From contig NC_068985.1 of assembly GCF_001194135.2 (NCBI RefSeq), positions 81,023,249-81,087,248 of the forward strand: 64,000 nucleotides of DNA, read 5' to 3'. Under the pieces are notes generated by a model that was not told where the DNA came from, searched no databases, and saw only the letters and a program-made list of their open reading frames with translations. This DNA comes from Octopus bimaculoides. Taxonomy: Eukaryota. Both the position numbers and the translations under genes were made by a program. Numbering within the stretch: the first letter of the stretch is position 1; each line of letters opens with the position of its first letter. Below, one piece after another: positions 34,861 to 63,171 of this stretch.

Positions 34861-34931
34861 TATTATTATCATTATTATTGTTGTCATCATCATCATCATT
34901 ATTATTATTATTATTATTATCATCATTATTA

Positions 34932-35476
34932 TTCAGTAGTCTTATTTTTATCATGTGCTTTCACTGCACTACCGAACATAGCACTGTGTGCTTTGGGTAT
35001 GTACTGTGGTTTGTTGTGGTGCTCTTATTTTCTCTGTATTGAAAGTGTTTTACATAGGATGTGTACAGTGCCTAATAGTACTGTTTTCTATATGCTATAT
35101 ATACTTGTATGTCCTGAAGTTTTTGTTATGCATTTCTCTGAATGTTTTTTTATCATATGCCTACTATAATAGGATCAGTTCTTGTTTTTATGCTCCTTAT
35201 TCGAGTTACCCCTATTTCCAAATTTTTGTATTTTGAAAGTTTCTCCATTTCTTTTAGACAAATGCTGCCAGCTTTTGGTATTGATACACCAATTAGAAAG
35301 CACTTTTTTTCCCTGGTGACCTCTGACAACTATATCCGGCTTATTAGCCTTGATTTCCCTATCTGTGTTTCGGCATATCCCAGAATATGGTTGTTTTCTC
35401 ATTTTCTGTGACCTTTTCTGGAGTGTGCTCATACCATCTGTTTTCTGTTGATAGTCCATAGTGTTGGCATAGCTTT
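34932..35476 (-). mobile_element. R4/Dong-clade non-LTR element, 5'-truncated (REL endonuclease and 3' UTR), in (TAA)n
   Basis: 'TDREIKANKPDIVVR', 'KEMEKLSKY' and 'LLGTVHILCKTLSIQ'; 3' UTR matches 48487-48586. Confidence 0.9.
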
Positions 35477-46123: not shown

Positions 46124-46160
<37 letters not shown>

Positions 46161-46809
46161 NNNNNNNNNNNNNNNNNNNNNNNNNNNNNNNNNNNNNNNN
46201 NNNNNNNNNNNNNNNNNNNNNNNNNNNNNNNNNNNNNNNNNNNNNNNNNNNNNNNNNNNNNNNNNNNNNNNNNNNNNNNNNNNNNNNNNNNNTAGGAAAA
46301 TAAAAAATAATAAGGCAGAATGCTAAACATAAAGCATATTTTAATATAGATGTGTATAAGGAGGATTAAAAAGGATTTCTAACCGGCTTTCATTGCATGA
46401 CAAATTTTCAAGAAGAGGGAGAATGAAAATGTTTTTTACAAAAGAATAAAAAATAATATATGAAAAAATAAATATACCAATACATTATATTGTCTTTGAG
46501 CTTATAAAGTTCAATGGTAATCCTTGTAGATAATTGTTAGAAAGGATGCATGAAATTAAAAGTTGTGTTGTTTAAAAAAAAGGAGCAGGAAGTGTGGTGT
46601 CAAAACAGGAAGTGTGTGTAAGGGAAGACAAATCTGTGGGTTTTATACTCTTTAGCTGGAGTTCTGAACTCTTTGTCAACAAGAAGTTTATGTCTGTTCT
46701 TAGAGAAACAAGAAGTATATTTATATATTAAGTGTTTGGAATATCTCTATAAAAAGATTCTCTTGTTTTTATTTTCCTATTATTTCTCCACGTGTGGTTA
46801 ACACAACCC

Positions 46810-47269: not shown

Positions 47270-47490
47270 TTATCCTTTCCCCTATAGGCACAAGGCATTA
47301 AATTTGGGCAGGGGGGGGGGTAATTGATTACATCAACCCCAGTACAGAACTGCTACTATTTTATTGACTTGAAAATGATGAAAGGTAAAGTTGACCTTGA
47401 TGGAATTTATACTCAGAACGTAAAAAGAGACAAAATACCAATGAGTATTTTGTCCAGCATGCTATTGATTCTGCCAGCTTGCCACCTTAA
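47270..47490 (-). mobile_element. SINE B
   Basis: Reverse complement of the B consensus. Confidence 0.8.
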
Positions 47491-47589
47491 TAATAATGCT
47501 GATGATGATAATAATAATGATGATGATAATAATAATAATAATAATGATAATAATAATAATAATAATAATAATGATAATAATAATAATAT

Positions 47590-48586
47590 AAATGCAAAAG
47601 AAATAGACAGAGAAAAATCCCAGCAATGGTTGAGATGCTCAGGACTCAAAGCAGAGACTGAAAGATTTTTAATTGCTGCACAAGACCAAAGCCTCCCCAC
47701 CAGAAATTACCAAAAACATATAATGAAAAGAAACATAACAAGTAACTGTAGAATATGTGGAGCTGGACNNNNNNNNNNNNNNNNNNNNNNNNNNNNNNNN
47801 NNNNNNNNNNNNNNNNNNNNNNNNNNNNNNNNNNNNNNNNNNNNNNNNNNNNNNNNNNNNNNNNNNNNNNNNNNNNNNNNNNNNNNNNNNNNNNNNNNNN
47901 NNNNNNNNNNNNNNNNNNNNNNNNNNNNNNNNNNNNNNNNNNNNNNNNNNNNNNNNNNNNNNNNNNNNNNNNNNNNNNNNNNNNNNNNNNNNNNNNNNNN
48001 NNNNNNNNNNNNNNNNNNNNNNNNNNNNNNNNNNNNNNNNNNNNNNNNNNNNNNNNNNNNNNNNNNNNNNNNNNNNNNNNNNNNNNNNNNNNNNNNNNNN
48101 NNNNNNNNNNNNNNNNNNNNNNNNNNNNNNNNNNNNNNNNNNNNNNNNNNNNNNNNNNNNNNNNNNNNNNNNNNNNNNNNNNNNNNNNNNNNNNNNNNNN
48201 NNNNNNNNNNNNNNNNNNNNNNNNNNNNNNNNNNNNNNATGACAACGTTTCCCTAAAAGAAATGGAGAAACTTTCAAAATACAAAGACTTGGAAATAGAG
48301 GTAACTCGAATGTGTAATCTAAAAACAGAAACAATTCCTACCATAGTAGGTGCCTTAGGTATAATAAAAAAATATTCAGACAAATACATAACAAAAACAC
48401 CAGGACTTACAAATATATATAACATACAGAAAATTGCACTACTGGGCACTGCACACATCCTATGCAAAACACTTTCAATACAGTAACCATAAGAGCATCA
48501 CAGCAAACCACAGCACATACCTAAGGCACACAGAGCTGCGCTTGGTAGTGAAGTGAAAGCACGATATAAAAATAAAACTACTGAAC
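47590..48586 (+). mobile_element. R4/Dong-clade non-LTR element, 5'-truncated, in (TAA)n; N gap inside
   Basis: 'WLRCSGLKAETERFLIAAQDQSLPTRNY..CRICG' and 'IVGALGII..IQKIALLGTAHILCKTLSIQ*'. Confidence 0.92.
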
Positions 48587-48609
48587 AATAATAATAATAA
48601 TAATAATAA

Positions 48610-48806
48610 TCATACTTCCTAATATAGGCACAAACCTGAAATTTTTGGAGAGGGGATAAGCCGTTTATTTTGACCCCCAGTGCTCAAATGGCACTTCATT
48701 TATCAATAATGAAAGGCAAAGTCAACCTTGGTGGGATGTGAAGACAGATGAAATGCTGCTAAGCATTTTGACTGGCATGCTAATGATTCTGCCAGCTCAC
48801 CACCTT
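48610..48806 (-). mobile_element. SINE B
   Basis: Reverse complement begins aaggtggtgagctggcagaatcattagc. Confidence 0.8.
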
Positions 48807-48821
48807 ACAAAAGTGTGAGAT

Positions 48822-48939
48822 GCTTACAGCACCTAAGTTTTCCAAGTGGTCACTCATCTAAGTACCAACTAGGCTCAATGTTGCTTAACGTTGGTGACTG
48901 GACAAGAACTGGTACATTCAATCTGGTATAGCCATAAGC
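48822..48939 (-). rRNA. 5S rRNA pseudogene, full length (118 nt), with CpG-type decay
   Basis: Reverse complement gcttatggctataccagattgaatgtaccagttcttgtccagtcaccaacgttaagcaacattgagcctagttggtacttagatgagtgaccacttggaaaacttaggtgctgtaagc is collinear with the metazoan 5S consensus; terminal helix GCTTA/TAAGC; TTTT ~10 nt downstream. Confidence 0.88.
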
Positions 48940-48951
48940 AAAGAATAAGCA

Positions 48952-49005
48952 TTCCCATGCTGGGAATAAAACCCGGGCCACTTGGGTGAAAGCTAGGAAT
49001 CATAA
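48952..49005 (-). tRNA. tRNA-Glu(TTC) pseudogene, missing ~19 nt at the 5' end
   Basis: Reverse complement ttatgattcctagctTTCacccaagtggcccgggttttattcccagcatgggaa matches the anticodon arm, T arm and 3' acceptor strand of metazoan tRNA-Glu. Confidence 0.82.
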
Positions 49006-49066
49006 TAATAATAGTAATAATAATAATAATAGTAATAATGATAATAATAATAATAATAATAATAAT

Positions 49067-49346
49067 CCCTACAAGAAGTGCAAAAAATCATGTTAACTGG
49101 AACGACTCATGTACTGAGAAGAGCATTATCGCTGTGAAAACAACATCCATTCATGAATTTTTAAAAATTTTTATTTAAAAAAAAATTTTTTTATTTATTA
49201 ATTTTTTTTTTTAAATACATACTTTACCTGTGAATTTGCGTGTGTAAACTGGGAATGCATACAATGAGTTTCTCTGCCCTAGGTGTACGAAAAACACTCG
49301 GCGAGAAATGGAAGAAAATTTGAAGAAAGACGAAAAAAAATCAACA
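49067..49346 (+). mobile_element. Short 5'-truncated R4/Dong element of a second family, in (TAA)n
   Basis: 'QEVQKIMLTGTTHVLRRALSL*' plus a distinct 3' UTR; (AAT)n on both sides. Confidence 0.75.
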
Positions 49347-50019
49347 TAATAATAATAATAATAATAATGATAATAATAATAATAATAATAATAATAGTAA
49401 TAATCCTTTCTGTCAAAGGCACAAGGTCTGAAAATTCTAGGTTTTTATGCAGATCTGTGTGATCTGCATAAAATAAGAATCATTTCTAATTTAGGCTCAA
49501 TGGCAGCAATTTTGAGAGGAGAGGATTAGTTGGTGCCATCCACTTTCATGCTTGACTGGAACTTTATACCAATGATAGCTGAGAGATGAAAGATGTCTTG
49601 GTAGAATTTGAAGTCAGAACATAAAGAAGCAGAAGAAAGACATTACACATCCAGTGGAGCACACTAGCTTCATTCATCTCTGGTCTTTACATTTCCTCTG
49701 CATTCAGGTCCATGCTTCACTACCATGTAGGTTTGCTGTTCGTACACATGCATCATACAATCTTCCTTTCACTCCTTATAGTACTGACTCTCCTGGAATT
49801 GACTAAAAAGCATGTAGACATATTTCTAACTGATAACCCAAGGACTTACAAACATTTACAATATACAAATGCTAGTACTTCTAGTCACTGCACATGTATT
49901 ACGTATTTTCAATACAACAGAAAATACAAGACCAAAACAAAATGTTGCACATACTCAAGGTTGCATTATGTTGTATTTGATAATGCCATGAAAACATGAG
50001 ATTAAAAATAAAGTTACAA

Positions 50020-50058
<39 letters not shown>

Positions 50059-50067
50059 TGATGATGA

Positions 50068-50602
50068 TGCAGTGGCTCCCATGGCTCCTGATCTTAACTG
50101 ATTGAAAGTGTTATCATGTACATGTTTTGTCTTGGTGTAAAAGATGGGCTACAGCAAATATTCTGTTCAGTACCACAAATTTGCTTGTCAGTTGTTTGAC
50201 TGTAACCAGTCGAGTATGTCCCTTAGTGGCTGACAATATGTGTATCTCTGATCATGCACAGAAGTAGGGGGAGCATCATAGCCATGTATTGAGAGGAATT
50301 CTTTGGGGTTTAGATAATTCATCTCTGGAAACATGGGTGTTTCATTCAACAGCCTTAAACTACCCTTATTCAGGGATCTTTTGAGTGGGATGGGCTACTC
50401 AATCTGAAGAAAATTCTAACTGGGCCCCACCTGCAAGGTCATATGCTGTTTATCTTGATATGAGATCACCATGTCATGCCCATATAGTTGTGATGCATGT
50501 GTCTCGCTTACTCTTATTAGACAGGTACTCATGATGGGTATACTGGGCTTTGTATATTTAATCCCAGTGTCACTTTGGTGGCATACACTGCTCTCTCACT
50601 CA
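50068..50602. mobile_element. Family 'C' repeat, copy 2
   Basis: Collinear with 12645-13197. Confidence 0.85.
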
Positions 50603-52104
50603 ATGATGATAATAATAATAACAATAATAATAATAACTCTCATAGGCATAGAGTCACAAATGTGGGGAAAGGTATAGTCAATTAGACCAATCCCACTAAT
50701 TAAGTGGTACTATTCATCATGAAAGCTTAAAAGACAAAATTCATGGTTAGTGAGATTTGAACTTAAAGCACAGAGGAACATAACTAAATTCTACAAGGCA
50801 TTTATTTGGGTACTCTGCTGATTCTGTCAGTCTACTTGACAATGTATCGCTTTGGCATTATTGTCACATATATTGACTCCCATTTATAAGACTGGTATTC
50901 ATATTATCTATTCTAGAAAGATTAAAACCAAAGTTCATCTTGGTAGGATTTAAACTCAGAATGCAAAGGAATTGATCTAAATACTCTGCAAAATCCTAGT
51001 TTACTGACTGTTCCCTGTCATTGTTAAAACATAAAAGTCAATGAAGATAAATTAATACATTTTAATACTTTTAGAATAGATGTTTAGAAATTCTGATTTA
51101 GAGGCAGAATCAGTCTAGTTGATATAAATAATCCAGAATATTTTAGATGTTGATTTTAATCAATGAATTATTATTCAGATTTTCCTCATCAGAAAATATC
51201 AATGAATCAAGTGTTTTTACCCTCTTTGTTTTGGTTTCTTTTTTTAAAAGTTATGTTTGGATTAAAGGGTTAATATGTTGTGAAGCATCCCTTTTGTTGA
51301 TCTGTGCTCTGATATGCTGTTGATGAAAATCTATCATCAGGCTATAAAGAAAAATTGCTTTACTGCAGTTGGTTTTCATTATCTTATTGTTGTTGATGAT
51401 CTTTGATGAGAAAATCAGACTCAGCTTCAACTTGATTTACTTGTGTATGATTCAGTAAATGCAGATAATCTTTTGATAAGCTGTTGGTTTTTAAAACAGC
51501 CAAATATGTAGCTCAGTCTGCAATAAATATATAAAGAAAAAAAAGCAAAAACAGAATTCAGAAATAGGATTTTTATGGAATGGGGTATTTGTTATTTAAT
51601 CAGCCTCATCAACAGCTGTAAGACTGTGGAGCAGTGACTGAGATACTAGATGGACAAACGAAATGCATTATTGTATTTGGTCACATCTCTTTATATTCCT
51701 AATGTAAATTAGTTTTCTATTTTTTTGTTTTGTTTTAAGGAGTGATAAAGTAAACATCACGATTACATCAAATATGATCCTCTTGTGTACAAATTTTGGT
51801 CTCATGCTTACTTAAGAAATCGATATTATCAACTGTTGTTGGGAAGTGATTTGGCATAAATTGAAGAATGCTTAGAGAATGTCTTACAAACATTTTAGCT
51901 TTGTCTTATTTTATTCCAGTTTGCTTGGTGTGATTCTACATTTCATTCCATCAAGTCAATAAAGGAAATAACTGTATTTTGCTGGGATCAATCTCATTGC
52001 AAATATTTCTTATTAAAAATTTAGACTAAAAATATGGCATGGCTTGTGAGGGATATAATAGATTGGCCTTGACATTACTTCAGTAATGAAATATGAAGTA
52101 AGTT

Positions 52105-58020: not shown

Positions 58021-58328
58021 TCACATAGACAGCCATGCCTTCTATTTAATATTCACTAAAATCTTTGTTGTTTTCTTTTTCTACTTATATGTGTATTGAT
58101 ATGTATATATACATCTAGAAGCATTTAAATGTGTAAGTATCTAAATGTTGATGTGATCTACTTGTTTCTCCCATCAAATTACTGGCACAAGACCAGTAAT
58201 TTGGTGGGAGCGGCAAGTTGATTACATCAACACCCCTTTCACTGCATTTGACTGGCACTTTATTTTATTGATACTATGAGAATGAAAGACAAAATTGACC
58301 TGCGCAGCATTTGAAATAATAATAATAA

Positions 58329-58546
58329 TAAAACATTCAAACAAATACATAACAAAACCTCCAGGACTTACAAGTATATACAGCATACAAAAAATAGCAC
58401 TACTAGGCACTACACACATCCTACATAAAACACTTTTAATACAGTGAAAATAAGAGCACAACAAAAAACCACAGCACATACCCAAAGTACACAGAGCTGA
58501 ACTCAGCAGTGCGGTGAAAGCATATGATAAAAATAAGACTACTGAA
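58329..58546 (+). mobile_element. R4/Dong 3' end (same family as 47590-48586), in (TAA)n
   Basis: 'KYITKPPGLTSIYSIQKIALLGTTHILHKTL' and the shared 3' UTR. Confidence 0.88.
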
Positions 58547-59194
58547 TAATAATAATAATGATGATGATGATGATGATGATATAACAACAACGATAATAAT
58601 AAAGGTATTTAAAAACAAGTTGTTTCTAATTGCAGATCTTCCTGAAAAAGGTGCGCTTGAAGATCAGGTAAGTTATGTTTAATATTTGAATTGATAGAGT
58701 TGATAGAATGTTAGAAAAGACATCTGGGGCAGTGGATTAGCAGAACTGCTGGAGCATCAAATGGAATGACTTGTAGTATTTGTTCCAGCTCTTTGCTTCT
58801 TGAGCAATGAGCGATAGACTTAATCCATTGCTCAGCTTAGCTCCATTAGTTGGTTCTTGAGTAGATTTTGTGGAGGATTCTGTCGGAAGCATTTAATCCA
58901 GATCTCCAGTTTGTGGATACCTTTCTTCATCTCACCCACTCAACAGACTTGGATACCATGGAATGGATCAAGAAAAAGAGTCGGAAAATAAATGTCGTAC
59001 AATATTTAGCTGTCCCTTTATTTTTGAATTAATATCCTGCTGGATTTGACTTTTCATTTCACCCTTGTGAGATCAATAAAGTAAGTACCACTTTTATGTA
59101 TGGGTCAATTTAGTTGATTACGTACCTTTACATTGCATATTGGAAGCCTTGTACCATTACATTGCATATTGGTACCCTTGTACATGCACTTTTC

Positions 59195-62544: not shown

Positions 62545-63171
62545 CCCACAAGTACATGACGTTAGACATGAGTTGTGTTGTGTTCACTGAAAAAAACCAG
62601 GGTGATCTTTGATGAACCTGACAGTTGGGAAAATGGTGTCTATTTTGGAGATGAGAATCAACAACATTGACAACATCAACAACAGGGTGGAAGGGTCATG
62701 TTGTGGGATGGTATCATTGAGGACAGACTTGTAGGCCCAGTCAGGGTGTCTGAACAGCTTAAAGTGACCATAGTCGCCTACTGCAATCTCCTGAAGGAGA
62801 TCTTGGATCCCTGGCTAGATGACATACTGTTGTCACTTTTAAGGAATCTTGTATTCATGCATGACAACACTCCCTCCCACTCTGCCAAGACTACCCAAAC
62901 ATTCCTAGGGTCTTACAGCATACAAGGTGAAAGGTTGATGGTGTGGCTGTTAGCATCTCTGGATCTCAACCCTTTCGAAAATCTTTGGTCCATCATTAAA
63001 TGACTTGTTTATACCGATGGACGCCAATTTTTGTTGAAAGATGTCTTACGGGTGACCATCAAAGTTGCAACAGAGGCAGTCCAACCTGCTACGATTAAGG
63101 AATTGATAGATTCTATGACTAATAAGCTTTTTAAAATTATCTGTCGAAATGGCCCTCATGTGGCTAAATAA
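62545..63171 (+). mobile_element. Tc1-like transposase pseudogene with DD37E spacing (TRT-like)
   Basis: 'FDEPDSW', 'QQQGGRVMLWDGII..LVGPVRV', 'FMHDNTPSHSAK..GERLMVW..DLNPFENLWSIIK..GRQF'; 37 residues between the second D and E. Confidence 0.9.

Follow-up and report, generated by a model that had tools for sequence, protein, structure and literature searches.

The tRNA-5S-SINE block

The question raised by this locus is how a piece of a glutamate transfer RNA (tRNA-Glu) and a complete copy of 5S ribosomal RNA (rRNA) came to lie 12 nt apart, in the same orientation, on the minus strand of a 64,000-nt stretch of the Octopus bimaculoides genome (contig NC_068985.1). This whole stretch is hereafter called the window, and all coordinates are window positions; the modules are read on the minus strand, from 49066 down to 48587. 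A first-pass annotation had interpreted the pair as the relic of a dicistronic RNA polymerase III (Pol III) unit or as the head of a hybrid short interspersed element (SINE). Our analysis favors another origin, to which we assign a probability of about 0.6: the block at 49001-48587 would be a one-off tripartite chimeric retrocopy, produced by a single retrotransposition with template jumps between three RNAs.

On direct reading, the minus strand presents an (ATT)n tract, the tRNA-Glu piece, a spacer, the 5S copy, its trailer, a SINE and an (ATT)8 tract, in this order. The tRNA, 5S and SINE modules share one orientation and are separated by 12 and 14 nt, with no microsatellite in between, and (ATT)n flanks the whole block on both sides. 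The first-pass annotation stopped at 48808, and a full SINE with an (ATT)n tail lies directly beyond this point.

The tRNA-Glu piece and its spacer

The tRNA piece, recognized by direct reading and by a Hamming scan, occupies 49001-48952 (minus strand) and is a 5′-truncated copy of tRNA-Glu(UUC) that covers tRNA positions ~24-73. Its 50 nt read GATTCCTAG-CTTTCAC-CCAAG-TGGC-CCGGG-TTTTATT-CCCAG-CATGGGA-A. They comprise an anticodon arm (CCTAG/CTTTCAC/CCAAG, anticodon TTC), a variable loop (TGGC) and a T arm (CCGGG/TTTTATT/CCCAG); on the 3′ side are the acceptor strand CATGGGA and the discriminator A, with no CCA after it. Positions 1 to ~23 are missing, and with them the acceptor 5′ strand, the D arm and the A box. 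The broken 5′ edge, GATT, overlaps the ATT repeat, a case of microhomology.

The query of the scan was the 3′ 50-mer of metazoan tRNA-Glu-UUC, in its human and fly types. The best match in the window fell exactly at 49001-48952, with 8 mismatches to the human type and 10 to the fly type, whereas none of 100 shuffles of the window gave fewer than 21. In relation to an idealised parent, 6 of the 50 positions differ. Direct comparison and the shuffle test confirm, at the level of sequence, the earlier claim that the 3′ two-thirds of a tRNA-Glu is present on this strand; ARAGORN did not call the piece, and the Rfam tRNA model missed it as well, even when given 59 nt alone. The copy as it stands could not function, a verdict that does not extend to a possible parent.

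The spacer, tgcttattcttt (48951-48940, minus strand), was read directly and is unique in the window. Its last three bases, TTT, directly precede 5S position 1, and its longest T-run is T3; as had been stated in the first annotation, it is 12 nt long and holds no T4. The spacer may derive from a pre-tRNA-Glu, as its 3′ trailer with a terminal oligo-U. Since a trailer is present and CCA is not, it would be the primary transcript or the gene that was copied, and not the mature tRNA.

The 5S copy and its trailer

The 5S copy at 48939-48821 (minus strand) matches the Rfam model RF00001 along its full length (model positions 1-120 of 120) with 62.4 bits. This is the sole Rfam match in the whole window above the gathering score, which is 38 for this model. 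The real 5S genes fetched from other animals score from 98 to 117 bits, and many pairs of the window copy are non-canonical or broken in the Rfam alignment. The low score and the broken pairs indicate a decayed full-length pseudogene and not a functional gene.

In relation to the closest real 5S gene fetched, 33 of the 119 positions differ. Transitions account for 28 of these differences and CpG-to-TpG/CpA changes for 12, and a single CpG remains in the copy. The window as a whole has a CpG observed/expected ratio of 0.21 and a G+C content of ~34%, and this strong CpG depletion agrees with the predominance of transitions in the decayed 5S and tRNA copies. Both the complete but decayed state of the 5S copy and the CpG decay proposed by the first-pass annotation were thus borne out.

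The 3′ trailer of the 5S copy, tctcacacTTTTgt (48820-48807, minus strand), was also read directly, is unique in the window and includes 1-2 nt that belong to the joint with the SINE. It carries a terminator-like T4 at 48812-48809 on the minus strand, 9 nt past the 5S end, where the earlier reading had placed TTTT at about 10 nt. The trailer is longer than those of the real 5S genes examined.

The SINE module

The third module, at 48806-48611 (minus strand), is a full-length tRNA-derived SINE with the head AAGGTGGTGAGCTGGCAGAATC and two internal deletions, delimited by blastn to more than 15 window copies and by an alignment that starts from column 1 of the family. From 48806 it reads AAGGTGGCGAGCTGGCAGAATC... 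and consists of a tRNA-like head followed by a body with an (ATT)n tail; this SINE is the most abundant in the window. The head begins 1-2 nt after the TTTT of the 5S trailer, being preceded by ...cacTTTTgt. Compared with the other window copies, this one lacks 14 nt in the tRNA-like T-arm region and 9 nt further on. Its divergence from a consensus built on nine other window copies is 24%, and those copies deviate by 15-23% from their own consensus.

The tail, read directly as (ATT)8 at 48610-48587 (minus strand), is of the kind found in other window copies of the SINE. It would be the downstream half of the target microsatellite and is, on the plus strand, the (AAT)n tail of the 3′ end of a long interspersed element (LINE). 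The tRNA, 5S and SINE modules are 12-28% diverged, mostly by transitions. Judged by this divergence, all three are old and similarly decayed, and the references are too rough for relative dating.

The microsatellite at both ends of the block

The usual 5′ junction of the SINE in the window is (ATT)n followed by AAGGTGG. Among the 12 other heads, 8 directly follow at least (ATT)3 and another 2 follow degenerate ATT repeats, a pattern which suggests that the family integrates into or beside (AAT)n/(ATT)n microsatellites. In the block, the (ATT)n instead lies ~195 nt upstream of the SINE head, exactly where the tRNA piece breaks off at its 5′ edge. Such a displacement would be expected if the SINE cDNA had been extended at its 5′ end before it integrated.

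The upstream tract, at 49066-49002 ((ATT)n on the minus strand and (AAT)n on the plus strand, by direct reading), would be the other half of the target microsatellite. The tRNA fragment adjoins it, in agreement with the first-pass statement that the tRNA 5′ end was lost at a trinucleotide tract. The tract, 49002-49066, doubles as the tail of a neighbouring 280-bp element. At least three other elements adjoin the same (AAT)n/(ATT)n microsatellite, in both orientations.

As no ATT occurs between the modules and the microsatellite lies at their outer edges, the simplest account is that the tRNA piece, the 5S and the SINE entered as one cDNA. The earlier argument against two independent insertions 12 bp apart, one of the tRNA piece and one of the 5S, is upheld. 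One microsatellite bounds the whole block. The tRNA-5S linkage is real and was probably RNA-mediated.

Both internal joints have the same form, in which the next RNA begins with its first base after a T-run: TTT and then 5S position 1 at the first, TTTT and then the SINE head, with 1-2 nt extra, at the second. TTT occurs at ~4% of the window positions and TTTT at ~1.6%. Two such joints would be an unlikely coincidence had the adjacency arisen at the DNA level, and we infer that the joints correspond to RNA ends.

Proposed origin by template jumping

In the proposed mechanism, the reverse transcriptase of a LINE that serves the (ATT)n-tailed SINE family would nick an (AAT)n microsatellite. The 3′ OH of the (AAT)n strand would pair with the (AUU)n tail of the SINE RNA and start target-primed reverse transcription, and the cDNA would then copy the SINE to its first base, with the plus strand read upward. 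At this point the enzyme would jump to the 3′ end of a 5S transcript that had not been processed, with a trailer that ends in UUUU, and copy it to 5S position 1. A second jump would lead to the 3′ end of an unprocessed pre-tRNA-Glu, whose 12-nt trailer ends in UUU and which lacks CCA. Copying would stop near tRNA position 24, and the cDNA end (...GGAATC on the plus strand) would join (AAT)n via AAT/ATT microhomology. The insert would have been dead on arrival, its later decay consisting mostly of CpG transitions. The (AAT)n tail of the LINE 3′ end on the plus strand may have been the priming microsatellite.

Enzymes of the R2 type make end-to-end jumps with a few added nucleotides, a behavior that would fit the extra g or gt at the joint between 5S and SINE. 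Template jumping, together with non-templated extension, has reportedly been described for a reverse transcriptase of a non-LTR (non-long terminal repeat) retroelement (PMC8857657).

The 3′ trailers on both captured RNAs hint at jumps among nascent Pol III transcripts in the nucleus. A weaker reading is that the reverse transcriptase may jump preferentially to nascent Pol III transcripts that end in oligo-U.

Chimeric retrocopies of this kind have precedents. In Magnaporthe, human and mouse, bipartite and tripartite forms arise from single and double template jumps (PMC2104539), and chimeras of L1 with 5S rRNA and with tRNA have also been described (bioRxiv 10.1101/2025.02.02.635956). The template switch to 5S rRNA invoked for the 5S-headed SINE HaSE3 (PMC3272025) is a further case. 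The block resembles the LINE template-switch chimeras, such as U6/L1, 5S/L1 and tRNA/L1 of mammals, MINE and WEIRD/Mg-SINE/MGL of Magnaporthe and B2/U6/L1 of mouse, in the direct fusion of distinct RNAs in one orientation. The 3′-most partner is, here as there, a retroelement with a tail recognized by the enzyme, with a full-length small RNA upstream, and the tripartite cases are explained by two jumps, as we propose here.

On the other hand, the 3′ partner in the octopus block is a full-length SINE, which implies an end-to-end jump, whereas in those chimeras it is a 5′-truncated LINE. Here it is the 5′-most partner that is truncated, and both captured RNAs are precursors with 3′ trailers. The target is an (AAT)n microsatellite, and the enzyme would be that of a putative (ATT)n-tail LINE and not L1 or MGL. 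The 5S and tRNA parts are in sense orientation, while in human L1 chimeras they are mostly antisense and truncated (bioRxiv 10.1101/2025.02.02.635956).

Several points weigh against this origin. In classical L1 chimeras the 5′ partner is full-length and the 3′ partner truncated, and this arrangement is reversed here. Both captured RNAs would be rare precursors, although the mature forms are far more abundant, and the spacer ends in T3 rather than T4. In the real 5S genes with flanks read, the T-run starts nearly always 0-3 nt after the gene, against 9 nt here. The partner LINE is putative, as is its template jumping. No target-site duplication can be read, because both flanks are (ATT)n; the same occurs in one human tripartite chimera that sits in a microsatellite (PMC2104539). 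The uniqueness of the two junctions is known for the 64-kb window only. Finally, the joints are known from the assembly alone, and the scaffold is a gapped draft: the window contains 12 runs of N (e.g., 47769-48238, 5238-5557 and 46161-46292), the nearest of them, 47769-48238, ~350 bp from the block.

Alternative explanations

An unlikely variant keeps the template jump but divides the history into two steps. A chimera of tRNA-Glu and 5S would have formed first, by priming from the microsatellite on a pre-5S RNA and one jump to pre-tRNA-Glu, and a SINE would have been inserted later and independently, exactly where the 5S trailer met the microsatellite. That this microsatellite is a repeated landing site, with at least three other elements adjoining in both orientations, is compatible with such a sequence of events, as is the frequent insertion of window SINEs into older (ATT)n tails. 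However, no ATT repeat separates the 5S trailer from the SINE head, so the later insertion would have to fall at the very first repeat unit, and the 5S RNA offers no (AUU)n tail for recognition by the enzyme.

The dicistronic unit of the first-pass annotation is quite unlikely. It supposes a present or past cephalopod Pol III unit of tRNA-Glu and 5S. Its primary transcript would have terminated at the T4 after the 5S and then have been picked up in one jump from the SINE RNA, or else have retroposed by itself. One jump would then suffice in place of two, a single precursor RNA would be needed, and the absence of T4 from the spacer would be accounted for. Units of this kind exist in Yarrowia, including one with tRNA-Glu(CTC) (PMC2566860). 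The gap between tRNA and 5S is there 4-5 nt, and once 7 nt; a gap of 17 nt is that between two tRNAs in the single tricistronic gene (PMC2566860).

The octopus block has in common with the Yarrowia units a tRNA directly upstream of 5S on the same strand, an intervening stretch free of T4 and a terminator downstream of the 5S. Its gap is 12 nt in place of 4-7, its tRNA is Glu(TTC) in place of Glu(CTC), and the TTT right before 5S position 1 is of the kind found in a terminated pre-tRNA. Furthermore, the Yarrowia units are intact, multicopy and transcribed, whereas the octopus locus is a single decayed copy within a retroposon insertion, without the 5′ third of the tRNA and its A box.

Real 5S genes were also searched for a linked tRNA. 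A total of 40 were fetched, all non-cephalopod, from other animals including the mollusc Lottia gigantea, by a metagenome scan and by way of spurious open reading frames (ORFs) that cover 5S ribosomal DNA (rDNA). Peptides of the antisense and sense frames of 5S matched 67 and 174 "proteins", respectively. The named matches were from Lottia, rotifers and insects, and loci L001-L004 carried animal-type 5S; none of the 5S-peptide matches showed the 5S signature of the window copy. A metagenome scan for 5S with the same helix I gave 25 loci, which differ from the window copy by at least 9 non-transition differences and in which no tRNA gene was called.

ARAGORN found no tRNA gene in the loci that hold the 40 real 5S genes, and a pattern made of the tRNA-Glu 3′ end, 1-30 nt and the 5S start had 0 matches in the metagenome contigs. 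These two results, neither of them from cephalopods, count weakly against a dicistronic unit. A match to the spacer in P0135 ("MLSLC" against "MLILC") was discarded as a coincidence, as it lies in an rDNA intergenic spacer.

Some of the loci are of interest in themselves. The 5S genes of Lottia form tandem arrays (L031, 5407-7279, KB203083.1; and L032) with a 182-bp period, composed of a 119-nt gene and a 63-nt spacer, with TATATAAT just upstream of the gene and T5 3 nt downstream. The Lottia "hypothetical proteins" LOTGIDRAFT_78529, 76989 and 73590, among others, are spurious ORFs antisense to 5S genes. In the GC-rich locus L030 (Logan contig SRR27489469_230148), a 5S lies inside the rDNA intergenic spacer, between the 28S 3′ end and the 18S 5′ end and on the opposite strand; no cephalopod marker was seen in this contig.

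A dicistronic unit, if true, would mean that an animal makes 5S rRNA in a tRNA-driven and possibly TFIIIA-independent way, for which the yeast Yarrowia is the one known case so far. Intact tRNA-Glu/5S units elsewhere in cephalopod genomes, if they existed, would be notable for the expression of animal 5S rRNA.

It is likewise improbable that the adjacency arose by coincidence at the DNA level or is an artefact, whether as an old cluster of small-RNA genes invaded by SINEs, as a set of independent insertions or as a misjoin of the draft. The 12 N gaps of the scaffold, the nearest ~350 bp away, speak for such an artefact, and the SINE and the microsatellite are repeats at which misjoins may occur. 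Nevertheless, the tRNA-5S and 5S-SINE joints lie in non-repetitive sequence and the module boundaries coincide with RNA ends. In addition, neither an upstream promoter region of 5S nor a tRNA 5′ half is present, and (ATT)n on both flanks fits an insertion.

The hybrid retroposon family with a tRNA-Glu and 5S head, a composite like SINE3/AmnSINE1, is very improbable: composite families of 5S and tRNA-SINE do exist, such as HaSE3 (PMC3272025), and the repeat annotation of O. vulgaris has one "5S" SINE family (PMC13282606), but the T4 at 48812-48809 separates 5S from the SINE body, so that a Pol III transcript started upstream would end before the tail needed for retroposition, the SINE keeps a complete tRNA-like head, the 5S is complete with its trailer and not a promoter-only fragment, and no second copy occurs in the window, which contains over 15 ordinary SINE copies.

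Beyond this, SINE3, AmnSINE1 and HaSE3 show the same ingredients in the same order, with 5S upstream of a tRNA-derived SINE that has a LINE-type tail. Those families are multicopy, the 5S replaces the tRNA head and no terminator lies between; the octopus SINE keeps its own head, T4 stands between the modules, a tRNA-Glu piece lies upstream and one copy is seen. The origin of HaSE3 has been explained by a switch from the RNA of a tRNA-derived SINE to 5S rRNA (PMC3272025).

From the first interpretation, then, the linkage of tRNA and 5S and their common insertion stand, while the dicistronic relic and the hybrid SINE head are both disfavored by the SINE module and the microsatellite context. Also against both is the absence from the 64-kb window of a second copy of the tRNA-spacer-5S junction or of the 5S-trailer-SINE junction. 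A SINE enclosed with them in one microsatellite leads to the simpler account of a single chimeric retrocopy, which needs neither a dicistronic gene nor a hybrid SINE family.

Neighboring elements in the window

Adjacent to the block, at 48243-48586 on the plus strand, ORF translation revealed the C-terminal part of a LINE ORF (to 48486, ending in ...IPTIVGALGIIKKYSDKYITKTPGLTNIYNIQKIALLGTAHILCKTLSIQ before the stop codon) followed by the 3′ untranslated region, with an (AAT)n tail that reaches 48610. This LINE 3′ end has three copies in the window, with 84% identity (48243-48610, 34898-35157 and 58322-58580), and lies tail-to-tail with the SINE of the chimera on the same microsatellite. Pfam gave no match for the ORF queries beside the block, three of which overlap the LINE element at 48243-48586 and a fourth of which lies outside it. 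A label that named Dong/R4 as the agent was dropped: the LINE end at 48243-48610, with its (TAA)n tail, runs on the strand opposite to the SINE and is not shown to be its partner. Long "ORFs" at 47324-48486 are an artefact of the N runs.

On the other side, between two (ATT)n tracts, a 280-bp non-coding element occupies 49345-49067 (minus strand) and ends in ...gcacttcttgtaggg(ATT)n. It is not part of the chimera, and the R4 label that the earlier annotation had given it was neither confirmed nor refuted.

The region 48587-50660 (minus strand) is a pile-up of retroposon ends in both orientations, each closed by (ATT)n or (ATC)n, with tracts at 48587-48610, 49002-49066, 49346-49400, ~50025-50060 and ~50605-50640. 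The presence of elements in both orientations at these tracts suggests that the trinucleotide repeat acts as a repeated landing pad.

Elsewhere in the window, a reverse-transcriptase ORF at 1824-2483 (minus strand) matches Pfam RVT_1 with an E value of 5.5e-13, and a homology search with it gave almost only ENA entries, at 48-70% identity. A weak mariner-like DDE_3 fragment, below the Pfam cut-off, was observed at 62671-63000 (plus strand). An apparent inverted repeat of 99% between 5424-5580 and 46136-46292 was rejected, as it consists of two N runs.

Significance of the chimera

If the block is a tripartite chimeric retrocopy, as we propose, it would be a functionless, dead pseudogene of the sort that retrotransposition ordinarily leaves behind. 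Its modest value would lie in offering a clean natural double template jump in a LINE/SINE system that targets microsatellites, outside mammals and fungi. The block would also illustrate how 5S-headed SINEs are proposed to begin, with 5S fused upstream of a tRNA-derived SINE. A preference of the reverse transcriptase for transcripts that end in oligo-U, if true, would explain the birth of both 5S- and tRNA-headed SINEs.

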